Shown one piece after another: positions 15,802 to 33,186 of a stretch of DNA of 54,994 bases; position 1 is the stretch's first letter, and every line of letters begins with the position of its first letter. The notes under the pieces are model-generated. The model did no database searches. It worked only from the letters and a program-made list of their open reading frames with translations, and was not told where the DNA came from. The translations under genes and the position numbers were made by a program. Source of the DNA: Hyphochytrium catenoides (lineage: Eukaryota > Protista > Hyphochytriomycota); contig FLMG01000291.1 in NCBI GenBank assembly GCA_900088475.1, forward strand, positions 1-54,994, in the 5' to 3' direction.

Positions 15802-16084
15802 GGTTGAGTTGGTAAAATAGAGTCATGCACAACTATTCTATGTACTTAGGATCTCATCATCTTCAAACAGGCTCTAAAGTACCTGTTGCTCAGAGAGCTC
15901 TAACGCCGCTCCCTTCCTCGGCAGTGAACTAGCAGGCTAGCCGGCCTAGATAGGTAGAGCACAAGGTACAGAGCTCCGCCCGACGAACCAGCGAACAATC
16001 AATGACGAGCCTCGATCTCCGTTATGAAGTCCACACCGCAGCAGATTTCCAGGGCTCGTTGAAGATTCCTCAATTCTCTTACAG

Positions 16085-16230
16085 AAGATTTACCAAAAGT
16101 CAAAAACGTTTTTTTTACCAAAGTAAGTAAAGATCAATAGAGCTTTGTTTCCTCCCTCGAGATAGAGGCAGTGGGTCAAAAACACTGAAATTTACAGGGA
16201 ACACCACACTTTTATGACAAGCCTTCGGTC
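16085..16230. promoter_or_regulatory. AT-rich patch in the divergent intergenic region (possible bidirectional promoter)
   Basis: tttaccaaa occurs twice and there is an aaaaacgttttt palindrome, between divergent start codons at 15801(-) and 16598(+). Confidence 0.3.
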
Positions 16231-16597
16231 AAGTTTGCATGTGAAGAGTCAAGGACCTGGCGTTCTCATGTTTGTTCTGATCTCGCTTTCTCTTCTGAAG
16301 CTTTGGGCTTGACTTCTTGCTCTTATTCATGGTTCAGGAAGTGATGGATCCGGCAGCACAAGCTCTGCTGTCATCGCCTAGAGTCCACGGTATGCCCTAA
16401 GAGTGACTGGTCATGCGTGTTCAATAGACACATCTGCTTTCATTGAGAAGCCCGTTGAGGTCCTGGCGCCTAACTAGCTCTGGAAGACGAAAGTTCTCCT
16501 GCAGGGTCACTGAATCCAAGGAGAGCAGTGCGGGCCAGCATAGAGGTGCTCGCCTTGAGAGATGAGGACTTTGAAGTCCATGAAATAAGATAGAGTC

Positions 16598-19500
16598 ATG
16601 CTTTCCCTGAACGGCTCATCGCAAACGGTCGAAGGTTGTGCCTTTTACGGGGACATGTCCGAAGAGGACTGGTGCCGCGCACGCCGTTATTCTTTGGAAG
16701 CTTTAGATATTTCAAAGCAGCAGAGAACTTTGAATGCCAAGCAATTAGCGAGCAAGCGTCGGGCCCTTACTGGTGGGCCAGTCAACAGGGACGATGAGAG
16801 CCCTCTTACGCTTCAAGAAGACCGTGTAACCCTGGGCATGAGGGCGGACGAAGCTGCTCAGTCGCTTTGTGATGCGTTGCTGCGGATCCTGCCTCCACAG
16901 CCTCTCGATGTTTGGGGGGACATCGGGAACCCCGAGCAAGAAGGAGTGGGAGGGGCATCTCTCGCTAAGGAACTAGAACAATTCAAAGTCTTTAAAGACT
17001 TTGGAGGAATCACTGCGCTATTTGGGCTCTTAGGACTGCGTACTGCCCAAGAAGCTTCCAGTCATCCATCGAAAAATCGCCCTCTCCTATCTCCTCACGT
17101 TCTGGAAGCAATGGCTCTCCCCTTTTGCTCCCTATATCAAAGAAAGGCGTTGAAGTCTACCTTCGCCCTAGAACGTGACCTCATTGAGTCTATCTTTCTC
17201 CTTCTTGAGTCTCTATCCGAACACTATGGGCCTGCGGATGAAGGAAGGGATCCTTGTCTTGAACGGGGAGATGAGCTGACTGAAGACGTAAACCTAGACC
17301 AAGGCGAGGAGTGGCAACAGCATTTGCCTCTGTTTGCGTTGTGGCTGAATGTGTCCTACGACAGGACCATCTATGATCTTTGCAATTTCTTTGCGGGGAA
17401 AGCCTCTTCTTGGTCGTTACTCCTCCGTTGCAGGCTGGGGAAGGTAGTCAGTGGCGCTTTTTCTATACTCTCTGCCGACCGGTGGGTAGAGTTGATGCAG
17501 AGGGTTCTGCCCGGGACGTTAGTTAATAAAGAAGGTGGGCTGAGAGTACTTCCAGAGGAGCATCATCGTCTCTTCAACTACGCTGAAGCGACCGAGAGAG
17601 AGAGAATTGAAGGCTCAGTGCAGAGAGAGAAACGTAGGAGAATGCTGGAGCTCTGCCCCTGTGTGGACTGGCTTGCCGGAAGAAGACTCAAAGTGGCCCT
17701 ATCCCACCAGGGAAGAAGCCACATAAGAGACAAGGAAGCGACAGAAAGGCGACCGAAGGACGGGATTCAGTACAGTTTGTTCTTCTGGGGACCAAGTTTA
17801 AATCATAGCCTCGCTTCTATAGCATCGCGCTCTCTTGCTGTCCCTGAAGAAGAAGGCATCATCTACAGCCGGCTTATGGATTTGTATACAGCCTTGTTAG
17901 GCGACCCGCGCTTCTCCTTAGGTTTGTTCACTTCTGTGGAAGACACGGAGTCGTTGGAGGCGCATGACTTTTGGTTTAGCACGGCAGATGTGCCTGACGC
18001 AGACACCTCAGAGCTTATCCTGTTAGAGGGCCTACTCAATGACAGTCTTCTTCACACCGCCCGCCTAACAGAAGAGAGTAAAGACAAGCCGTTGAGAATA
18101 CGCGGGGAGATCATCTCTGCCTGTGCTCACGTAGAGAAACGTCAGAAAGTCAGATCGGAGGATTTCCGCTCCATTCTGATGGCACTTCTCACCAATGAAG
18201 ACGTGACTGCGCGGGAGAACAACCTCTGTCTTGTCCTTCTGAAGCTGGAGAAACTGTCTAAATGTCTGATGACAGTCTTAAAGAAACACTTCGGTCGGCT
18301 TGAGGAGAGAGAGATCATTAACGGCGGAAAGGGAAGGCTGGAGCGATTGGCCATCTTCTGGGATCGACTTAAACCATGACCGGGCCTTCTCTATCCTTCT
18401 GTGCTCCTATCCTGAGCTTGAGGACGGAGCAGAGAGAATGGAAGCGGTTGAGGTTCTCTCTTCCCGTTTCTCCTCTTTTCCTGCTGCTGCTTCTTTTCCT
18501 GCCCTTGTCCGTCTCTTTTCCACGACGGAAGAACGAAAGGAGCTGGCTCAGCTTTGCCACAGTTTCCTAAAAAAACAGCTGCGCTGTACTGATAGGACCT
18601 TTAGCGCTATGGTGGCTATCACTTCTATTCTNNNNNNNNNNNNNNNNNNNNNNNNNNNNNNNNNNNNNNNNNNNNNNNNNNNNNNNNNNNNTCGGAAGAT
18701 GTGGAGCCGTCCTTTAGTTATAGAAGACGAGGATGCCATTGCCGATGAGGAACCGGTCGCCGACGAGTACGTGACGGACCATCTTTGTGGGTTACTTTTG
18801 ACTAAACCAGGAGCAAGAGAAAGACTTCTCGTCAACCCTTACATTGTACCTTTTCTCCTGGAAGTGTTCCTGGAAGGCCTGGAAAACTTTTCATTATCAG
18901 CTCCTGATGTGCTCCAGGGCTACGAGGAGATTCCCATGCAGCAGAGACTCTGTTCTGTTCTTTTCTTGTCCAGGCTCCCCATGTACTCTGTGCTGTTGCT
19001 GGGGCAACAGCCACTTCTCTCACCCTTGTTGATACGGCTCGTAGAAACTTGCATAGAGATTAAGAGTGCGGTCTATCACCGGTGCCAGTCACAGGAGAGA
19101 AAGCGTCAATTAGTGAGCTATGTAAATGGGAAGCTACTGTCTCCTGCCCTAGAGTTGGTGGTGCGGCTCGCCATAGTAGAAAGATCATCGCTGCCTGAGG
19201 CTCTGTTCCAAAGGGAGGTACTTATTCTTCTTTCACGCAGCGGACCTGCCATGGAAGCTCTCCTGGACTATCTGGAGGGGACAATCGATGTGCCTCTCAA
19301 CGATCTCACCCGTCTACAAGACACCTTCTATGAAGAGAACGTCGTTTTTGGAATGTACATGAACGAGGAGATGGACCCGGTAGATCACCTATGGGATCAA
19401 GCTATCATCCTTTGCTCCGGCAGGATGAAGGATAAAGACGCGAAGCAAGACCGGTTATCCTTGTCTGCTAACGAGCAGTCAGACAGGCACTGCAGTGATG

Positions 19501-22500
19501 ATAAGGAGCTGACAAGGAAGGTAGCGACAGACAAGGACGAAAGAAATCTGGAGAAGATGCAGAAGAGGATAGCGACGTCTGCGTTTTGGAGCCACGCTTT
19601 ACCTTCGTCTCCGTTTCTTCAGTCTTTGCTGTATCTCGAGGCCGTCAAGGTGTACCGTTTCCAGCCGTACGCAGCTTGGAGCCTTGTTTCCCTGTACAGG
19701 TCCAAAGCAACAACCTGCACCAGAGAGCGTAAGAGAGGGAAGTTCCAGAAAGAGGAATCGAGAGGTGAGTGCGATAATCGTCGAGTTGCTTGTAGCACCT
19801 ATTCTTCCCACGCCGCGTTCGGGGGCCCTCTTCGTTCTATCTGTATCTCTATCGTCTACGGTTGCCCACTTACTCGTTCCTTACTGTTCTCCCTATTTCT
19901 CAGGAAACCTCTTTGGACCAAAGAGAGAAGAGCCTGTCAGGGAAGAGGGAGAGAGTCAATGGGATCTCTCAGCCATCCATCGTAGCGTTGTATCTCATCT
20001 GGAAGAGCTTCCTTCATCCCCTGTGGTTTACTACGATCGGTCGGAGTGGATCCAATATTTAGAGCTGGACAGGGAAGAGAGCCTGGAGGACGGAAGTTTA
20101 AACCTACCTAGAACGTTAAGTGAGCCTCGCTCCCTCTCTCTTCTTCCCTGGGAGGACGGGCGCCTCCTGGCGTCACGAAAGAATGTCCGCTTCTCGGATT
20201 TACCCCTCACTCTTTTTTCGAAGAAGGACGTAAAAGAGTGGAACTCTGGTCCTCTCTCTCATCTGGAGTTTGTTGACCCGCCCAACCAGCGTGAGTTTTA
20301 CTATTATGAAGTCAAGGTGCACTATGCGCCAAAGGAAGACGTGCCTAGCGGAGAAGGGAAATCGTGGAAGGTGTCGATAGGCTTTGGAGAAGCTCTGTAC
20401 CCCGAAGGTGAGCTCCCGGGCACCGAAGGAAAGCTGAATTGGACTTCCTACCAAGCGTTCAGCATTGGATACTTCAGGTACCTTATTCCACTGCGTGCGT
20501 CTGATGGTCTTCAGTAGAACCAGCAGATTAACTAGAGCAATTGCCTTGTCTCCTGAGTCAGCTTTGTTGCCTTACTTTCTACTTCTGTCGCTTCCGTGCC
20601 CCTGGCATTCCCTTTCTATCAGTCCTACTGACAGCAGCTGTTTTTAGTGACGGCCGTATTGCCAGTTCCCTGAAGAAGGAACCACTATTTTGCTCTCCAG
20701 CACTTCAATACTTCGAAGGAGACACTGTCGGTGCAGGGATAGACGCCAGGAACCAGACGTTCTTTTTCACCAGGAACGGCAAGGTGATCGGTCCGGACTT
20801 TGGAAAGACTGACAGCAGCTTACAAGGTGAGAGGAAGAGAGAATAACTTCTATTTATCTTCCTAGCTTCACAACGGGTGAAGAGAGTGAGGAAGGAGAAT
20901 AAGTTTACGGCAAGGAAGCGGTCTCCAAAAGATGAGCAGAACATCGAGCAAAAAGTAAAGGATGATGAGAGGACTACGTCCGATCGGAGGAGACCGTCAG
21001 AGGCAGAATAGGGATGAAGGTTACCCACGACGGCGTCGATTAGAAGAGGGACGAGAGTAACGTACACGCGATGCTTACTCTCTTGATGCTGGTTGTTGGT
21101 TCATCTTCAGGGTCATCTCTATCTTGTCCAAGAGAGGAAAATCAGGAGGGCATGCGCCTTTCTCCGCATTCGCCAGAAGGTGTGCTTCCGCTTCATGGTG
21201 CGATAGGCATGGCAGGGCCTGTGGAGCTCATTATAAGTGGAAGGGACAAAGACGGAAAGGGGTCATGGGCCAGGGAGTGTACGAACAAAATGGACGACAC
21301 AGGATCTGCGACCGGAGCTGAGAAGGCCCAACGAGAGCAGCAGGAGGCAGGAGAGAAGGCTGCTGTAGGCCACGGTGTTGAGGCGCCGATTAGCAGGAAC
21401 CAAGGTCGCGGAATGCCACAGTTTCCCTGGCGTTCGCACCTCCCATGCAGAGAAAGCCGATGGGCGTACCCTGAAGCGGAAAAGGAGAAGCACGTGGTTG
21501 AGAACCGCTCCAGGATCTGTGTCACCAGGGATTTTCTTCCTGCGGAGGCCATTGTTGGCCTAAAGCGCGACCTGAAAGTGCTAGAGGAAACGTACAATAC
21601 GGGCTTAGGGCGGACGCTAGGCGCAGTAGTGGACGACTTGATAGAGGGACAAACGCTGCTCAATCTCATTAATCCATTCCTCTCCCTCTTCGTGGATGGG
21701 GTTAGCCTCTTCGAGGATGCAGAGCTCGCTCGTAAGAGATGGTTGACGGGAAGCAAGAGGAGATGGAGACGACCATGGTCTCCGTATCAGCTTCTTCCCT
21801 CTGTCTTCTCGGTCTCTCATGAGGGAGAGACGAGAATTGTCTCCGATCTCTCTCCTTGGATCCCCAAGCAAGAGTTCCCAAGCCTCTACTCCTCTTTGGA
21901 GAAGCTTTTCTCTTCTTTACTCCCACTGTTTGAGCGTTGCTGCTTCGACAGAAGCGGAAAGAACAGAGGAGAGACGCTAAGAGGGAGAAAGCTTCAAGTC
22001 ATCGTGAAAGCCACTGAACACATATTTGCTCCAGGAAGGCAATTCACACCCGAAGATTGGAAGTCAGAGGGCCTTCCCCACGAGGACATTCTTGCCGTGG
22101 GCATCTTCTTTCCTTCTCACTCTCACTCTCTTTCATCCCAGGGTTTGGCTTTTCGACAGCCTGCAAACTTTGAAGAGCTCTTCCCACAGCCTCCAGACGC
22201 TACAGTCAAGATCACTCCTTTCCCTTACTATAATCATCCTAAGTCAAACTATGGGCGGGAAACCGGCTTACTGTCGATGTCCTCCGATGGCAAGTTGAAG
22301 CAGAAAGGCTATGTCAGCAGCTGCGGAGTGGGAACGGTCGCGATCGGTGAGGGGACGGCAGTGGTCTTCAAGAACAACGTGCAGTACAAATTGCTAGGGA
22401 TAACAACGAATCCTGAGGTGGAGGGCGGAATGTCACGATCTTCGCTCACCGCTATTACATTCATGCTTGTCTGTCCTCGGCATCCGATCCCTTCGTCCGT

Positions 22501-22828
22501 TGAAGTCCCTGGCAGAAAGAACAGGCCTTGGGAGATGTGCGTCTTCCTCATGATGACTGCAATTGAGGACGCCGCTCTCTCTCTCTCTCCACCCGTACAT
22601 TTCTCTGTAGAACTCCTGCTGAGGATTATGAGTTTCGTTTCTCCTGTTACAGTGGATCTGACTATGAGCGCCATGCGAGTAGACAGGGAATGGCTAAGCA
22701 TCGAGAGAGTTTATTTTGCTCATGAGGACAACTATTACGCAGAATTGACACCAGACAAGTGGGCAGAGATCCGTACAGCTATGGTAGAGAGCTATCAGCT
22801 CGATGAGATTGATCTCCTTCGTCGCTGA
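16598..22828 (+). CDS. Large helical-N-terminus + SPRY + DUF4246-like protein, paralog A (~1880 aa); exons 16598-19764 (with a +1 frame break near 18370 and an N gap), 19904-20477, 20648-20826, 21111-22828; possibly a pseudogene
   Basis: SPRY motifs YYEVKV..VSIGFG..ELPG..SIGYFSDG..GDTVGAGID..FFFTRNGK; DUF4246-type motifs YQLLPSVF, LYSSLEKLF..LPLFE, LRGRKLQVIVK, LAFRQ, GEGTAVVFKN, FMLVCP; colinear with paralog B. Confidence 0.8.
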
Positions 22829-24469
22829 TGGGGAATAGCTACGCCAAGAAGAGGCTGGTGGAGAGGAGACGGCAGAGTACTAGACAGATTATGTTCCTCT
22901 TCGAGTCCTTTGGTCAACGTGCCACTGCCATAGCTCTTATATATATCCAGTCTCAAGCCTTGTAAGCGCGGAACCAGAAGTCGCGCAAAAACTCATAAAG
23001 AAGAGAGAAGAGAACAGAGCAGAGCCTGGTACGTTAGGTGAACCTAAGAACTCGCAAATCTCCGCCAGCATCACTTGCCGCCATAGATTCTTGGCATACC
23101 GTGCACTTATATGGAGGTGAGTTTGTTGGGAGGAGATTGCTCTCTTGGTGCCTCAAAGCGTCATACGTCCGTCGTAAGCTGCAGCAGGCGGAGGTCGTCG
23201 TCTCGTCTGTTCTGTGTGGTCAGTGGGGAAGGGTGCTTGTCTACTCTGTGCCCCCGATCAGAAGATAATGCTTGTCAGAGCTGTGTTTTTTGCTGAAAAA
23301 TGCACTGAGTTAACGAGGCCGTCTCTTGTCAGTGTAAGCACTAGAGTCCTATCTTGGTGCCCCTCTGATGTCTTCTACGGCTCTGCCATCAGCTTTTTAC
23401 GGCTTGCCATCAGCGTTTTGTCTTCAAATGGATGTGAGTTCATAGCTTTTCGTCAGCTTGTCAGTCAGGGTGCTCACAATGCAAATGCTCTTGCTTAGCA
23501 AACATCAAAAACTCTGCAAGGGAAGAGGCTTAAGAGAGAGTGGCCAGGCAGCTACCTGCTATCTGTCTGTGCTCGAGAGGCTTCCTTGAGCTTACGAACC
23601 AGAGCAGCTGCCTGTAGCGTCAGAGGTTCATTGGAAGAGGATGGAGAAACACTTTCGCTGCATAATCTATGGTGCGCTAGCCCATCAGGAAGAATAGCAA
23701 TGCATTCAGTTTGCACGATATGGATCTCTCTCTTACTTTCGCTTTGTCTTGAAGGTGCCCCTCCCTCTTTGGCTCGCAAAGAGCCTACTTCTGCTGTCAC
23801 CATCCTCCCCCTTCTTGCTGTAAGCTCTTCTTCTATATCGCATGTTCACTAATCCTCTACTCGCCAGCCTTGTCCTAAGTAGACTGGGCTGGCAGGGTAC
23901 TCGGCTTGCCTGGTGCCCATAGGAGGACACAATCTCAAGTCATTGTATGCCTCCTTCAAGGTCGTCGCTGCAATCTGCCGTGACATAGCAACCGTGATCT
24001 CTGTAGATGGACTGCAGTCTCTGGCCTGCCTTCTATTCTCTCTCACTCAGAGACAGCACTACGGCTTGCACTCTTCGCCTGGAACTCACAGACCAAGCAG
24101 AACTTCCTGGGCACCAGGTCAGTCGAGTCTCCGTCATCCTCTCCCAGCCGCTGTCCCAGCGCTGGTGGGGCTCTCAAAGCCGCGTGGCCGGAATCTTCGC
24201 TTGTCCGTTGTCTCCATAGACCAGTAACTTCAACATCAGAATCAGAACCTTTTACCGAAGATATGGCACTGATATATTCTGGTCTTGAATTCGGCACTAA
24301 AGTCAATTTTCTCCACAGATCCGTCTTTTTCAGAATAACTAACATGAAGTCGTACTCTTACTATGGATCGGAACGGCCACAACTGTGCTGTTGTAGGATT
24401 GCGCTCGCACTGTGGCCAGACAAACCTAAAGATTCGGAACCAGAAGCACTGCGCCCCAAGGAGGAAGAG

Positions 24470-24723
24470 AGGAGAAAGAGACAGAAGAGAGAGAGAGAGA
24501 GAGAGAGGGAGAGAGGGAGAGAGAGAGAGAAAGAGAGAGAGAGACAGAGAGACAGAGAGAGGGAGAGAGAGAGAGAAAGAGAGAGAGAGACAGAGAGACA
24601 GAGAGACAGAGAGACAGAGAGAGANNNNNNNNNNNNNNNNNNNNNNNNNNNNNNNNNNNNNNNNNNNNNNNNNNNNNNNNNNNNNNNNNNNNNNNNNNNN
24701 NNNNNNNNNNNNNNNNNNNNNNN
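24470..24723. repeat. (GA/GACA)n microsatellite running into an assembly gap (N 24625-24723)
   Basis: Directly visible. Confidence 0.95.
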
Positions 24724-24991
24724 AGTGAGAAACTAAGGGAGAGTACGACCAAAAACTGTGATTGTCCTGCGAATCGTTGATGCTGAAGATGACACGGAGA
24801 TGATATCGGAGCTCACAAAAAGGACCTTCGTCCACACCCCAGCGCGCCGTCACATCCGATGCGATGGCCCAAGCAGAGTCTCGCAATTGCTAGGTTTCCC
24901 ATTCATCGTTGAGGCCTCGGGAGGAGAGAGGTAGTTCTCTGGGGGATAGGCCGGCGTTGTGTCTGCACGCCCAGGCATCTGCAGCAGGACG

Positions 24992-27900
24992 ATGGGAGAC
25001 TCCGTGGCCCCGTCACCAGCATTCTTATCCTCTTCGTATCCGGTTATGGGCAAAGAAGAAACTGAGGTTCTATTAAGCTATGTGAAGCAAGCTAATGAGC
25101 TCTTCAGGTTGCAGCAAGACGGCGAAGCTGAGCTCTCGCGGTTATCCTTTCCTGCATCTGGAAGCCGACACGATAGCAAGCAGAGCGGCATTCCTTCGAC
25201 GCAGGAAAGACAGGGTCCCAGTCGGAAGAAGAGAGGGAATGATGCTGCAGAAGGACTCTGCTCTCTTGTGCTTCAGAAATTTCCCTTCTCCTCCTCACTC
25301 TTTCCTTGTGTTCATCTAGAAAGCAGTCTGAAGGCAGGGGGAAGAGGGATCGATGGTGAGTCAGCACAGAGAACGAGAGAGAAGGCAGAGATGCCTCAAC
25401 ATGTCGACCAGGCGCTTTGGATCTCGGAGTTCGAGCGCTTAGGTGGACTCACAGCCTTATATACTCTCCTACAGCTGTCGTGCTTTGGAGACGAGGAAGA
25501 AGGAGGTGCACGGTCTCTTCCCCTTCTCTCTCTTTTTACCCTGCGGCAGATGGCCTTCTCTGTGGTGTCTCTCTTACAATTCGTTGACAGTATGAGTGCA
25601 GAGTCAGCATGGACAGTCACTGAACAACTTCACGCTTCAGGTTTTGGCCTGCTTCAGAGGGCATCCCAATATTATGAGGAGAGAGAAAAGAGGACAGAGA
25701 GAGACTATCAGATTGATGAGAGAAAGCTGAGCGTGCGGGTTAGAACAGGAACCTTGTCTCAAACGGACCAGCCGGAGGAAGGAAGAGCAGTTGAAGAAGA
25801 CGAGGAAGATGAAGGCTGGACTCAAGACGTAGGAATCTTAGAGCTTTGGCTAAGAATGGTGGGGAAAACGTCCCTTCTTTCCTCTTCAGGACCAACTCTT
25901 CTCTCGTCGTCTCCGTTCCTGGCTTGTGGCGGCACTGCCTCTCATTGGATCTTATTTCTAGGCTGTAGCCTGGGAAGAGTAGTGAGAGCTTCTTTCGATG
26001 CTCTTTCTTCGTCTCTCTGGGTAGAGCTGATGCAGAAGATCCTGCAAATGGCCTTGCCACCAAAAGAGACGGAAGAAAGCCAGTTTCCCCTGGACCATCA
26101 CCGATTCTTCTTCTATGAAGGGAAAGGTAAAAAGAGAGACAAAGCAAAGAAAATGCTAGAGCTGTGTCCCTGTGTGGAGATGCTAATAGGAAGGCCGGTG
26201 GAAGAAGCTCTGCAACAAGGGGAACCGCAAAGTGGAAAGACACGACTCTCTCCACAGAGAACCAACACTCTCTCCAAGCTTGCCTCGCGCTCTCTCTCTG
26301 TTTCTGAAGAAGAAGGCACTATTTACCGGCGGCTAATGGATCTCTACAGTGGCTTAATGGACGACACCCGATTCTCTTCTCTCTTAGCAGAAGGAAGCGC
26401 AGACCAGACGGAAGATTTTTATGGCTTAGAGCAGCATGGAGACGGAGAAAAAGAAGACGTTCTCACTCTCGAGGGCATACTGGGGAACAGTCTCTTGCAC
26501 GACACAGTGGGCAATCTGACAACCCCAATGAACGATTTGGTGGTGACAGGAGTGAGACTCTCGCCTTGTGCGGAGGAAGACAAACGTAATATTCTTGAAG
26601 CGAACGCCTTCGCCACGAATCCTTCTATCCTGGCGCTTCTTTCTGCCGAAGAGCTACCTGAAAGACTGGAGAGAATCTATCTGGTCCTCCTAAAGTTAGA
26701 GCAACTGGTGCGGTGCGTAGTGAAGTATCTGAAGCAGCACTATGGCCCCGATAGTACTGAGAACGAGAGAGAGACATTCCAACACCAGAAAATAATAGCG
26801 CGGTTCTTCAACCGTGCGAGCCAGGTGACTCAGCTTCACGATAAGCTGTCAAGTGTACTGATGGCACACGGCTTCGATCAGGAAAGAAAGACTGAGTTGG
26901 TCCCGCTCTTTAGTCAAAGCTCGGAGAGGGAAGAGTGGACGCAAATCTGCCGAAACTTCCTGGAAAGGCCGATTCCGCTCTCAGATCCCACCTATGACGT
27001 TGTGCAGTCCATCATTTCGACGCTGCTGCTCCGCTCGTGGCTCCCATACGATCCAGCGTTGGATGATCCTCTCTTGTCTTCTCTCCTTCCACTGAAGGAA
27101 TGGGAGGGCGAGTTGGGCCCGCTAGGGATAGATATAGGATGTTTGACCGACGCTCTATGCGCACTGATTCCAAGGAAGACAGGAATCAGAGAGAGGATTC
27201 TTCTCGATTCTTCTCTCCTCTCTCATCTCTTGCGTCATGTCCGTCAAAGCCTCAACGAGGTCAGAGCAGTAGGTCACTATAAACGATCTTCAGACGCGGA
27301 GCTGCTGGGAGAAAGACTGTCTCCACTGCTCTTCCTTGCACGATCTCCTCGGTTCTATCCCTACTTGGAAAACCAAAGAGCTTTGCTCCAACGTCTTCTG
27401 GAAGAGATCGTAACCATGGGCATCACCTTCAGACGAAGGATCATCGAGAGGGCGCCAACATCCTCAAGGAAAGAATTTGCGGAAAGAGACGATCTTCTCG
27501 ATTCTCTTGACAATGAAATCCTCTGCCCTGCACTAGAGATTCTGCTCCGTCTCTTCCACTGGGAAGGAACTCTACTCCCAGGGTTTGTCCTAGAAGACCC
27601 TGTTCTCACCTTTATCTCTTTATGCAGCCCTACAGCGGAGGCTCTCCTTGACTACCTAACGGAGGCTAACAGAGAGCTTCCAGCCACTCTGCTTCATCGC
27701 ATAGGGACCTTCTTCAGTGGTAAGGACCCTATGAGCCATTGTGTAGACGGGAGACTGGAGAGCTTGGACTATCTCTTCAGAGAGATAATAGAGTTCTGCG
27801 CAAAAGCACTGAAAGACCTGGAAGAGGGAGAAAACGTCATGCAGGAAGAGGAAACCCTTCCTTCCTCAGGCGAGAAGGAACAGAGAGACAGAAGGGGAAG

Positions 27901-30900
27901 AGAGGATGTCCTTCTTCAGCAGATAGAGTCTTCCTTGCACTGGAGAGAAGAAATCCGTCGGTCTCTCTTTGTCCAGTCGTTGCTTTACTTGGAAGCAGTG
28001 TCAGTCTGGAAGTTGGAGCCCAAAGCCGCGTGGAGCCTCGTTGCCCGTTATAGCTCCAGAATCGATGCAGCGGGGGATGAAGCAACGGCTGTCCAGCCCA
28101 GATGCCGCGGAGGTGAAAACGGACTGTAGCGCAATTCACTCTTCCTTTCTTAGGTTTTTACTTTGTCCATGCAATGGCCTTGTGCCGCTTGACCATTATG
28201 GTCACCCATCTCTTGTTCTCTCTCTCCCTCTCTCTCTTCCCATTGTTCTCTTTTTCCTTTAGCTCTTCCCTCCATCTCTCTTTTCTACATGCTCTCTCTA
28301 TTTCCCTATGTCCACCATGAGGAACGGCACCTGTCTGCGATATGCTTAGTGAGGCTGACATACCGCACTGTCCGCGCAGAAAAGGAAGGCCCTCCGGTGT
28401 GGTGGAACCTCCACGACATTCACCAGAAACTTCTATCGCAAACGAGACGAACTTCTCGCTCTCCATTGGTGCAATACGATCGCTCCGAGTGGGTGCAATA
28501 CTGGGAACTGGAAAGAGAACAGAGCTTAGAAGAGACACAGAGCCTGCCGCCAGTGGTGTGGAAAGCTCGTTCTCTTCCTCGTCTTCCATTTGAGTCCTCA
28601 CGCTTTCTGGCGTCTCGGAGAGCCGCCCGTTATCCGGATCTACCCCTAACAGTTTTCTCCAAGGAACGAGTGGGCAATTGGAACACTGGCAAGCTGCCTC
28701 AGCTCAATCTTCATGGAGAGGAAGAGTACTACTACTTTGAGGTCAAGGTGCAGGCCACTCCCAAAGCGGAGGAAGAGAACGAGGAAGAGGATTACCTATG
28801 GCTGGCTTCCATCGGATTTGCCGAGGCGATTTTCTCTGAAGCAGAGGTTCCAGGCGCAAACGACACATTTAGGTGGTCCGTACACGATGTGTTCAACATC
28901 GGCTACTTTAGGTACCGCCCTAGACTCTCTCGTCCTCCTTCGCTCTCTCTCCTTTCTCTTCAATTCTTCGTAGCTCACTTCTTCTCCCTTTCCCCTTCCA
29001 TCTCGTGCGTTACTCTCCGCTGTTCCTTGTCTCTCCTTAAGGATGTCTGCTTTCAGTTAAGTCCTTAGGCTTCTTCTACTCTGACTCTCTCCCACTCTCT
29101 TCCTCTTTATTCTCGTTACGTTTGTTGTATGGTCCTTTGCGCCATGGATGTGTTTGAAGGAAAGAAAGCAATGTGCCTATACATGGGTCTCTATTCTCAG
29201 CAGTCGTCTTTTCCCTGCCTACTAATGCTCTCATTTGCCTGTTTTATCCCCCATCTTTCCTCTCTCTTACCCTCTGTGGTTGCTTCTCCCTGATAGTGAC
29301 GGCAACATCAACACATCCTTGCGAGAAGAGAAGACGATCATCTTTTACTCTCCTGAAGCGTATTACACTGAGGGAGACACCGTCGGCGCAGGGATAGACC
29401 TCAACGCACGGACTTTCTTCTTCACGAAAAATGGAAAGGTGGTCTTTCCTCCGACGGCTGAGAGCCTCGTAGGTAAGCCAAAGAGGAGGATGTGAAGGCT
29501 CTCTAGTCTGGTCGACAAGCAAGAGTTCTTATCCTATCCAAGTGTGGAAAGTAAGAGAGGGTTCAAAACTGACGCTGGCGGTAATGAAAGAGAACCATGC
29601 ATGGTTAACCCCTGAGAGAACATAGAGAGGGAAGCATAAGGATGGTGAAGGAGACAGAGCACTTGGCTTGGCGAGAGGGAAAGGGGTTGGGGGCGGAGGG
29701 AGAGAGAGAGAGAGAGAGAAAAGAGAGGAAAAGAGAGAACGCGATGCGTAAGAAAGCGCTGAGAGGCTTGCGGCGTGGGAGACGAATAGTGGCAGGAGTC
29801 ACAAATCGTTTTCACATTTCTCTTTGTTCTCTACGATCTGCTGACACACTATCGCCGATAACCCTTGGCCCTGTAGGGCTCAAGAGAAAGAGAGATGCTG
29901 AGGAACCTGAAGAGCCGCTTCCAGTCTTCTTCCACCCTTCTTGCAAGGTAGAGTGGCTCCACGGCGCGGTGGGTACGGAAGGACCCGTCGACCTGATTAT
30001 CAGCGGAATGGACGCGGAGGGAAAGGGACCGTGGGCGGATCCCTCGTCTTGCCCTCAAGCGAGAAACAGCAGCGAGGAGAGGGCTGACGATATGGACGTG
30101 GACGGAGACGGATCCGGCCGGGATCAGGGGAAGGCTGAGGTAGACGAGACCGACGATGATGCGACGCACTATCATCTGAATCATCCCAGGACAGAGTGGT
30201 TCCCCCATCTCCAGCAGTCGGAGATTGATAACTGGACCTATCCTGACGTGCACATAGAGAAGCTTGAGAGGGAGAATCGCTCCATCCTCTACGTCGCCAG
30301 CGATTTCCTCCCTCCACAGCTCACGCTAAGCCTACAGACAGACATGAACCAGCTGGGAGCGGGCTATAGCGCAACCCTAAGGAAAGCCCTCCGTCTTGAG
30401 AAAGAGATCTACAAGGGACAGAAAGTGGTGAACCTTCTTGATCCATTCCTCTCTCCTTATATTGAAGGGGTCAGCCTCCCGTCTGACCCTGCCAAGGTGT
30501 GTCAGCGCTGGGCAAGGGGCAATGGGAGACGATGGAGAAAGCCGTGGTCTCCATATCAACTGCTTCCTTCGGCTTTCTCTGTGTCTTCCGAGGGAGAGAC
30601 AACTATCCTCTCGGACCTTTCTCCGTGGGCACCAAAGGACCATTATCCATCGCTTTATAGCGATGTGGAGAAGCTCTTTTCTTCACTCCTTCCTCTGTTC
30701 GAGCGCTGCTGCGCGGACAGACAAGGAGAAGGAGGAGAAACCTTGAGAGGGAAAGAACTCCAAGTGATTGTGCGAAGTGCTGAGTATCCTCTCTCTCCAT
30801 CTCAAGACTCTGAGGGAGATGACTGGATAGCGACTGGTGTCCCTCAAGAGGACATTCTGGCAATAGGAATCTTTTTCTTCTCTCTCCCCCGTGGTCTGCG

Positions 30901-31594
30901 GTTTGAAGGTCTAGCCTTTCGACAGACAGTAGACGCGGACAACCTACTCCCTCAGCCTCCAGCTTTGACAGAGCAAATAACTCCGTTCCCTTACTACGCT
31001 GAGCACTCGACCATCATTCACAGAAACGCCTATTTCTTTGCTGATGGCTCTCCTACTCGTGCTGCTGACCATATGGTTGACAACAATCGCCGTTTTGTGG
31101 GCAGCTGTGAGCTAGAAACTGTTCCTGTCACTGAGGGGACAGCGGTGGTCTTCAGGAACAACATTCAGCACAGATTTCTGAAGATAACTGCGGATTCAGA
31201 AGCGGCACCATCTTCTCCGCTCTCCGTCAAGGCCCTCACTTTCATGCTGGTCTGCCCGCGTCACCCTCTGCCCTCTTCACTTGAGGTGCCACCATCGATG
31301 AACAGACCTTGGGAAATGTCCCTGTTCTTCATAATGGTGGCGCTAGAAGATGCGGCTCGCTCGTGTTCCCCTCCTCTTCAGCTGTCAGTGGAGCTTCTAT
31401 TGAAGATTGCAAGCTTTCTCTCTCCTCTCTCGTCAGAGTTGACGATCGAAAAGGTTCTGGAGCACCGAGCTCGGTTCGATAAAGAGCGGAAGCTCCTTTC
31501 GCTTGCGGACCATCAGTATGCAGAACTGACTCCAGATGGATGGTTAGACTGGAGAGAATGGATGCTTGAGGCCTATCGACTGCCCAGCTATTAA
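24992..31594 (+). CDS. Large helical-N-terminus + SPRY + DUF4246-like protein, paralog B (~1848 aa); exons 24992-28112, 28380-28911 (alternative acceptor 28350), 29297-29472, 29877-31594
   Basis: First exon is open for over 1000 aa and shares blocks with paralog A (GGLTALY, WVELMQK, MLELCPCV, LASRSLSVSEEEGTIYRRLMDLY, QSLLYLEAV..AAWSLV). SPRY and DUF4246-like motifs present, with the same three intron positions; the model totals 5547 nt in frame. Confidence 0.85.
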
Positions 31595-33186
31595 AAGTAA
31601 GGATGAAACAGCTGGGCTGGCTCTTTCTTGGAAGGAAGAGGTGCGAAAGACATGCTGACGGAGAGCCAGGAGAGGCTAGAGAAGGAGGTTCTTATACCTT
31701 CCCCTCTGTTTGCATGCAGGAGAGGAGATTTCTATACAAGTCCTAGGCGTGCATGGCGAGATAGAGTGTCTCTCTTGTTTCTTCCAAGGTCATCTCGGTC
31801 TGTCTGTCCCTCTCTTTCTCTTTCTTTCTTTCTTTCTCTTTCTCTTTCTGATCTTAGTGTCTGTTGTTCTTGTCTGGGTGTATGGCGTGTCACCTTTCGT
31901 TTCTTGTTGCCTCTTTTTCAAGCGTCGCATGCCTTTCAGAATGGCGAGCCTAGTCATTATTAATGTCAATTGAGGTGCTTGTAGAGACATGGGGTTGCTG
32001 ACTTTGATAAGCATGAGGAGCGGCTGGTTGCCACGCCGTGGCTGGGGCTTAGAACTGAGGACATCGTCAGGAAGGGAACGAGTATGGAACAGTAGAAGGA
32101 GGAGGCATCTTAGGAGATACGGAGAGAGAACAAAGGAGCAACATCAATCTATTAGAGGACAGCATCGGGAAGATGGGGGATTATCCCGTCGGCTCCGCTA
32201 CTACTCAGGATAGATAAGCGATCCCTCCCAATGACGCTTCAATCACATGGAGGCACGCGCCATGGCGCCCTTGCCTTGCTGCTGTCCTCATGCTAAGCCA
32301 CAAGCGACCTTGATATGCACAGTTGAGGTGTGATCAGACTATACAGAGCAGCGGGAGACAGAGTTGCTACCAATGCCACCATCCTACTCGTCCTTCTCGA
32401 GGGTAAAAGCCTCGCCACATCATAACTAGTCAAACTATCTAATCCAGAGCCCACCAGCCGCGCTCTGACGCAGATGGTGCCAGCGGTAGCGCCACGACTC
32501 CTATCTCATCCAGCCCTTCAGTAGCCATAGGCGGTAGCAAGCATCAAGCTCAATCAGTGGCCGAGCTCTGCCAGCGCTGGCCCAGCTCTAGAGGAGATCG
32601 GTCTGTGCCTCAGGCCTCAGACCAGCCAACAGCCATTCTGCTACTAGAAGACAGAGACAGAAAATCCTGGTTCATCCAATCTCGGTTGTCCCCAACAAAA
32701 TTCTCGGTCGTTGAATCTATATTCGTGTCTCTACCAACATTAATATCCTTTCAAATCCGGATTTGTCGGTAAGTTCGAGTTTGTTTTCAGTCACTCTTTA
32801 TTGCTTTCGGTTCAGGTGAAGAGTGGCGGGAAGGAGAAAGAGTTTGAAGTGCGATGACGGTGAGGAAGGAGACGACGGCCCCTTGTCACTTTCTCCTCTT
32901 CTCCTTTCTCCTCCTTCCTCTGTCTCCTCCGTTCCCGTGTGCTGGTGGTTCTTCCCTTGGTTGGTCACTTGCTCGCCCTCAACTTCAGCAGAGCTTCTCT
33001 TCCTTCCATTGAGATCGGGGCCCCCGATACGAAGACTGGAAGCGAGTGGGAGGACGAGGAGGCAGTGCCAACGCGCTAGGAGAAGAGTAGCTCTCACTTC
33101 CTCGAATCTTCACCTCTTTCCTCGCGTTCTTCTGCCCTGAGACGCCATCCATTCGAACCTCTGATGTCTAAAAAGGGCTGAGAGAT

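Follow-up and report, generated by a model that had tools for sequence, protein, structure and literature searches.

In fungi, liverworts, Streptomyces, and other organisms, DUF4246 proteins of the canonical kind stand alone, with a length of about 450-600 residues and often with a second domain, DUF4246_N. Here we describe two neighboring giant genes, A and B, in Hyphochytrium catenoides (GenBank assembly GCA_900088475.1, contig FLMG01000291.1; the window analyzed is the stretch of 54,994 nucleotides (nt) from position 1 to 54,994, forward strand), whose predicted products join a DUF4246 domain to a SPRY domain and a long helical region. A and B share with the canonical proteins the C-terminal homology, the predicted fold, and the motifs S-x-YQ-[WL]-LPS, LQVIV, and FxLVxP; they differ in having no DUF4246_N, no H-x-E/D...H triad, and about 1280 extra N-terminal residues (solenoid plus SPRY). 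The prolyl-hydroxylase-type 2-oxoglutarate (2OG)/Fe(II) oxygenases (PHD2/EGLN1, bacterial and viral prolyl 4-hydroxylases (P4H), and HrmJ/BelL) have the same fold in structural comparisons (Z 12-14), but their sequences are 7-13% identical to A and B, which lack the iron ligands.

Partial parallels to this layout exist elsewhere. Collagen prolyl 3-hydroxylase P3H1 and aspartyl/asparaginyl hydroxylase combine helical tetratricopeptide repeats with a C-terminal 2OG oxygenase, are active, and have no SPRY; A and B resemble both enzymes in placing a putative substrate-holding helical region before a C-terminal oxygenase fold, but have a much longer solenoid with no sequence relation to those repeats. 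JARID2 contains a catalytically dead 2OG-oxygenase fold (JmjC) that acts as a scaffold; in it, as in A and B, the oxygenase fold has outlived its iron ligands, presumably because it serves in binding rather than catalysis, but JARID2 belongs to another subfamily (JmjC), has other partner domains, and shows no detectable sequence relation. RanBP9/RanBP10 and the ryanodine receptors hold a SPRY domain, used in partner recognition, within a large helical scaffold; unlike them, A and B contain no LisH/CTLH or channel parts, and none of these proteins is known to carry an oxygenase-like domain.

Gene A (16598-22828) and gene B (24989-31594), both on the + strand, were delimited from three-frame open segments and tblastx comparison, and each consists of four exons. 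In gene A, exon 1 (16598..19764) encodes the all-helical N-terminal region in two open frames (16598-18376 and 18282-19982) and ends at a GTGAGT donor at 19765; exon 2 (19904..20477) encodes a linker and the N-terminal half of SPRY (YYYEVKV ... SIGFGE ... LPG ... SIGYF) up to a GTACCT donor at 20478; exon 3 (20648..20826), between the acceptor TTTTTAG and the donor GTGAGA, encodes the middle of SPRY (GDTVGAGID ... FFFTRNGKV); and exon 4 (21111..22828) encodes the DUF4246/2OG-oxygenase-like domain (W-K-S-E-G; Q-Y), preceded by the last strands of SPRY and a disordered linker. Gene B repeats this order: exon 1 (24989..28112, within a single open frame, 24950-28126) encodes 1041 all-helical, solenoid-like residues; exon 2 (28380..28911) the linker and SPRY N-half, ending at a GTACCG donor at 28912; exon 3 (29297..29472) the middle of SPRY, with a Pfam SPRY match; and exon 4 (29877..31594) the last SPRY strands, the disordered linker, and the DUF4246/2OG-oxygenase-like domain (W-I-A-T-G, with the distal His kept). 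The coding sequence of B is 5550 nt long, that is, 1849 codons and a stop, with no breaks.

An earlier note on this DNA, made from the sequence alone, had described two paralogs of about 1850 residues with three introns at equivalent positions and last exons of equal length, strongly diverged yet colinear; the exon mapping bears this out. All six introns are GT..AG, with GTGAGT, GTGAGA, GTGAAA, or GTAAGC donors and CAG or TAG acceptors at the first and third introns; the middle introns (20478-20647 in A, 28912-29296 in B) fall at one and the same Ser codon, that of IGYF-S-DG; the phases calculated from the coordinates are 1, 2, 1 for A and B alike; and the last exon of either gene measures 1718 nt. 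A tblastx comparison of 16001-23400 with 24724-32200 returned about 25 same-strand blocks in colinear order at 38-64% identity, and the identity between A and B rises from 32-33% over exon 1 to 46% over exon 2 and 48% over exon 4. Exon 2 of A also aligns as a homolog with exon 2 of five further paralogs.

The SPRY domain is spread over exons 2-4 and interrupted by two introns in both genes. Domain and similarity searches of the two gene models were run exon by exon, and Pfam SPRY (PF00622, curated cutoff 26.3 bits) matched exon 3 of A with 18.8 bits (profile positions 62-95) and exon 3 of B with 22.0 bits (positions 62-87); as the domain is divided among three exons, both scores stay under the cutoff. 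The SPRY landmarks nevertheless follow one another in order in both genes (YYxEV, IGxA, the xPG loop, SxGY-x-x-DG, GDxxGxGxD, xFFTxNG, and the final strands before xxG), and the start of exon 4 (LHGAVG.EGPV.LIISG) contributes the last strands, and by these landmarks the SPRY domain proposed earlier is present in both paralogs. Weak SPRY matches occur at the same relative position in four paralogs (C685, C578, C637, and C1884). Language-model neighbors of B exon 2 were SPRY and Neuralized clusters (0.86-0.89), which we treat as a lead only, and profile searches of the PDB sequences with the SPRY-exon and DUF4246 alignments found no match. Three paralogs carry long acidic poly-Glu/Asp inserts within the SPRY N-half: C1884 (L024:521-4822), C4646 (L027:467-1315), and C2331 (L025:7352-7975).

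A genome-wide search (61.0 Mb in 4759 contigs) identified 13 DUF4246 loci, 11 of which have the three-part layout (A, B, C3378, C578, C4015, C685, C4225, C1884, C4646, C2331, and C637). In each of the 11, a long open frame (777-1434 residues) lies upstream of an exon for the SPRY N-half, whose last residues read ..GY.R, and the SPRY C-half and DUF4246 follow. The other two, C2078 (L012:1246-3306) and C2461 (L039:5230-7137), are canonical stand-alone DUF4246 genes ending in SLCEH, and serve as internal controls for the family. In the paralogs, adjoining parts lie within single open frames: for example, C1884 has a 1434-residue frame holding the helical region and the SPRY N-half and a 692-residue frame holding the SPRY C-half and DUF4246, and C2331 has SPRY (28.1 bits, over the cutoff) and DUF4246 within one frame. 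Two genes cannot share a single domain, and the three parts are therefore predicted to form one polypeptide; the fused architecture suggested earlier for A and B is upheld by these bridging frames. In a tree of the DUF4246 domains (LG+G4, with support from the Shimodaira-Hasegawa-like approximate likelihood ratio test (SH-aLRT)), A and B are sisters (100), a long-branched clade that we call group I is recovered (100), and the fused copies outside it group with one another (93). The description of A and B as a tandem duplicate thus holds in that they are adjacent sister genes, but the paralog count shows the pair to be part of a family of 11 loci.

The N-terminal region (1041 residues in B, about 1040 in the architecture of both genes) is rich in leucine (15%), and Pfam reported no family and no repeat in B exon 1. 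An AlphaFold2 model of this exon, built from nine sequences, has about 44 helices and no strands, with a predicted local distance difference test (pLDDT) score of 63. When the model was searched with Foldseek, alpha-solenoids were the sole matches (transportin 3, Ufd2, NF1, and Kap95; E ~1e-4, template modeling (TM) scores 0.1-0.2), solenoid regions of RyR1 being among the weak fold matches, and the language-model neighbors of the region were solenoid families, with low recognition. The Leu-rich solenoid first proposed from the sequence agrees with this all-helical model, though the solenoid matches are weak. The helical regions of group I (seven loci including A and B) are homologous to one another at 22-33% identity; those of C1884 and C4646 match each other, and those of C2331 and C637 stand apart. 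Pfam searches of the paralogs' helical regions and SPRY N-half exons gave sub-threshold matches at chance level only (UPF0300, Nop14, and astrovirus capsid; ELMO_ARM at 20.6 bits in the outside contig L028, described below).

Pfam assigned DUF4246 (PF14033, curated cutoff 26.7 bits) to exon 4 of both genes, with 67.9 bits in A and 75.6 bits in B; DUF4246_N (PF21666) was not reported for either, and is present in the canonical C2078. An AlphaFold2 model of B exon 4, from 40 sequences, is confident over residues 134-570, with a core pLDDT mostly above 85. All Foldseek matches of this model at E <= 1e-3 are 2OG/Fe(II) oxygenases, and VIA-align superposed 170-200 residues on HrmJ, BelL, PHD2, P4H, and P3H1 with Z scores of 12-14.4. 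Because both comparisons match 2OG oxygenases, we assign to DUF4246, on the strength of the model, a prolyl-hydroxylase-like double-stranded beta-helix fold of the 2OG/Fe(II) oxygenase type. In addition, some DUF4246 relatives from outside this genome have overlapping Pfam matches to 2OG-FeII_Oxy_3 or 2OG-FeII_Oxy_5.

Approximately 30 of 34 outside relatives contain the motif W-H-x-E/D-G ... Q-H-[KRH] ... R-[KR], which represents the presumed 2-His-1-carboxylate triad and the 2OG-binding Arg; nine of the fused copies, A and B included, have it in part or not at all. The triad is intact in the stand-alone C2078 and in two of the giants, C1884 and C4646 (His and Glu in the first motif, distal His). 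The remaining copies are degenerate in different ways: C685 keeps the first motif and has lost the distal His (now Tyr); C2331 has lost the first His and keeps the distal one; C3378 reads K-R-E and also keeps only the distal His; C637, C578, C4015, and C4225 have lost both (distal Tyr); A has lost both as well (K-S-E; distal Tyr); and B (I-A-T) has lost the first His and the acid and retains the distal His (Q-H). The second stand-alone copy, C2461, lies outside this alignment. The position of the 2OG-binding Arg is replaced in A and B and variable in group I. These replacements differ from copy to copy, which suggests that the metal site is under relaxed constraint in the degenerate copies; 74 columns are invariant among six group-I DUF4246 domains despite the loss of the triad. 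The group-I copies also share invariant Cys/His residues (FERCC and LVCPxH) that have no counterpart in the canonical family; in B they are encoded at 30707-30712 and 31253-31264 (exon 4 residues 277-278 and 459-462), and the same columns are occupied in A and four paralogs. They might build a new metal or disulfide site. Judging from the missing ligands, the DUF4246 domains of A and B are probably non-catalytic. The earlier suggestion of an enzyme-fold decoy or ligand-binding domain accordingly fits A and B as far as the oxygenase fold and the degenerate metal site go, but it does not extend to the family as a whole, since C1884 and C4646 keep the full triad.

We also checked how widely the fusion is distributed. 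A profile search of 1.84 billion representative sequences gave 1758 matches (best 207 bits); the best 150 of these are 194-989 residues long, and none of those 150 matched the SPRY-exon profile. Pfam found no SPRY in the 62 longest outside relatives, and occasional partners of DUF4246 in those relatives are PBZ, WGR, DEK_C, ubiquitin, ZZ, BTB, Ank, HEAT, CVNH, and CobW_C, several of which point to chromatin or ADP-ribose signaling (for examples of fused relatives, see P0020, P0042, P0064, P0095, P0114, P0155, and P0168). The triad-poor or nearest outside relatives, P0011, P0018, P0022, and P0027, were considered as SPRY fusions and rejected, all being stand-alone or fused to WGR. Similarly, a word search with the more canonical C1884 frame showed no SPRY among the 120 matches listed (liverworts, chytrids, Mucoromycota, and Streptomyces), and word-index protein searches with B exon 1 and B exon 4 returned nothing, in an index that needs shared 5-mers and in which records from the same genome may be masked. 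A metagenome scan with general family motifs yielded 80 DUF4246 loci, none of the 80 with SPRY nearby, the same test being positive in eight of eight control loci; a scan with group-I-specific motifs found no relative. A literature search for DUF4246 found no paper on the family, the matches to PF14033 being Plasmodium gene names.

The exception is a Logan contig, L028 (SRR28521185), which has the solenoid-SPRY-DUF4246 layout at L028:240-4580: a 904-residue frame ends in the SPRY N-half, and a 542-residue frame contains the SPRY C-half and DUF4246. This copy is 38-42% identical to C2331 and C1884, its metal site is degenerate (W-E-L-A-G), and, as in the family, a phase-2 intron cuts the SPRY motif at the Ser codon named above. 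The contig comes from another eukaryote, because a HutD-like gene adjoining the family locus has no match in the H. catenoides genome. Save for L028, then, the fusion was absent from the relatives inspected, in line with the earlier note, which did not know it as a described family, and among the sequences searched the three-part combination was found in one other organism only.

Gene A has two irregularities in exon 1. An assembly gap (18632..18691) interrupts the exon; both flanks are open to the edge of the gap and match B in order. Coding sequence is hidden in it, because B has 41 residues here as compared with 27 plus the gap in A, and neither flank contains the PYxP motif that the remaining group-I paralogs share; the reading frame across the gap is presumed. 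Upstream of the gap, between about 18295 and 18432, the exon switches reading frame. Candidate introns were tested by script, and no GTRAGT-type intron fits this change, so a conventional intron was rejected as its cause. This leaves an indel of 1 nt near 18368-18376, be it real or an error of the assembly, and an odd intron of 139 nt (GTCGGC..CAG). Because the paralogs differ in the length of the loop in which the change falls, homology cannot choose between these. The assembly is a scaffolded short-read Platanus build from a heterozygous diploid (PMC5795050), which makes an indel error plausible. The helical region of C3378 (L013:6100-9646) is also found in two overlapping open frames, of 443 and 777 residues, with a break at a different place from that in A and attributable to an intron or a frameshift.

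The reading toward which we lean, with somewhat better than even confidence, is that A and B arose by tandem duplication in a lineage-restricted family of giant proteins, each combining solenoid, SPRY, and oxygenase fold in one chain, and that in this family the dead copies are likely non-catalytic and the intact copies are likely targeted hydroxylases. The gene structure, domain identities, fold, ligand loss, and family size are directly supported; a protein partner, the activity of the intact copies, and binding rather than modification by the dead copies are what we infer. Each predicted chain starts with a fast-evolving alpha-solenoid of about 1000-1400 residues, followed by SPRY and DUF4246. 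In C1884 and C4646, the oxygenase domain would modify a protein partner that the solenoid and SPRY keep in place, so that these proteins would act as targeted hydroxylases. In A, B, and most other members, where the iron ligands are lost and the remainder of the domain is conserved, the proteins would most likely be pseudoenzymes that keep this frame for recognizing partners and serve, without catalysis, as scaffolds, adaptors, or binders.

Several points weigh against this reading. No DUF4246 protein has a known function; and the loss of the ligand histidines makes 2OG/Fe catalysis unlikely, while other chemistry or ligand binding may still be possible. The SPRY match is below the Pfam cutoff in A and B themselves, and an hhalign comparison of the SPRY N-half with SPRY domains of the same genome was weak (P = 0.028 over 21 columns). 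Confidence in the N-terminal model is moderate, and its TM scores to solenoids are low. For A and B, expression and the splice junctions are predictions from the genome sequence, and the DUF4246 tree neither supports nor contradicts a single origin of all SPRY-fused copies. Finally, gene A, with its frame change and assembly gap, may be a pseudogene.

This last point can be taken further, to the proposal that A is a decaying pseudogene with a real frame change and that B is the sole functional copy of the pair. The frame change without a conventional intron and the disappearance of both triad histidines agree with it; outside the frame-change site, however, about 5.6 kb of A is open in the expected frames and every splice site is intact, the site itself sits in a length-variable loop, and an assembly indel error is plausible, as is the odd 139-nt intron. 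We regard decay of A as possible, though doubtful. A more elaborate proposal is a hyphochytrid-specific writer/reader or sensor system, in which C1884 and C4646 would hydroxylate a protein selected by their solenoid and SPRY parts, and the nine degenerate paralogs, including A and B, would have converted the oxygenase pocket into a site for binding, and so reading, the mark or a metabolite such as 2OG, with the fast-diverging solenoids coupling the degenerate copies to different partners; this would amount to an expanded, receptor-like pseudoenzyme family without described counterpart, and we consider it unlikely.

It is also quite unlikely, in our estimate, that A and B are still active oxygenases, or other enzymes, through non-canonical ligands that replace the missing His or Glu. 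Such an activity would be in keeping with the good conservation of the domain outside the triad, with the distal His kept in B and C3378 and the Glu kept in five of the six aligned group-I copies, and with the FERCC and LVCPxH residues, which could form an alternative metal site; but where the proximal His stood, the group-I copies variously have I, K, K, T, R, and Q, the distal His is Tyr in most, and the usual 2OG-binding Arg position is variable, a scatter that resembles relaxed constraint rather than a new fixed set of ligands. That the giant architecture is a gene-model artefact, with the helical region, SPRY, and DUF4246 being separate neighboring genes, could be argued from the junctions predicted from sequence and from exons 1 and 2, which have no Pfam match at all. 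One SPRY domain is distributed over exons 2, 3, and 4, however, the order of the parts is repeated at 11 loci and in another organism, and the frames are joined exactly by the intron phases; with adjoining parts in single open frames in the paralogs, we rejected separate genes, and an artefact is highly improbable.

DUF4246, a widespread domain without known function, is now tied by structure to the prolyl-hydroxylase-like 2OG oxygenases. One genome that contains canonical copies, intact SPRY-fused giants, and variously degenerate giant copies is a natural experiment: a side-by-side comparison of these copies opens a direct way to finding an activity and substrates for DUF4246, the first for this domain, and the set would be a clear case of repeated pseudoenzyme evolution within a single gene family. 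In addition, genes of 5-6 kb with an intron-split domain are easily mis-modeled as two or three genes.

Two smaller features of the locus were also examined. The basic patches SRKKRG and LKRKRD, proposed in the earlier note as resembling nuclear localization signals, are present in B but not in A, and they lie in low-confidence, non-conserved stretches, which makes them weak evidence for such a signal. An assembly gap between A and B (24625..24723) lies 265 nt upstream of the ATG of B and outside the modeled coding sequence, the B frame opening at 24950 and its first ATG being at 24989.

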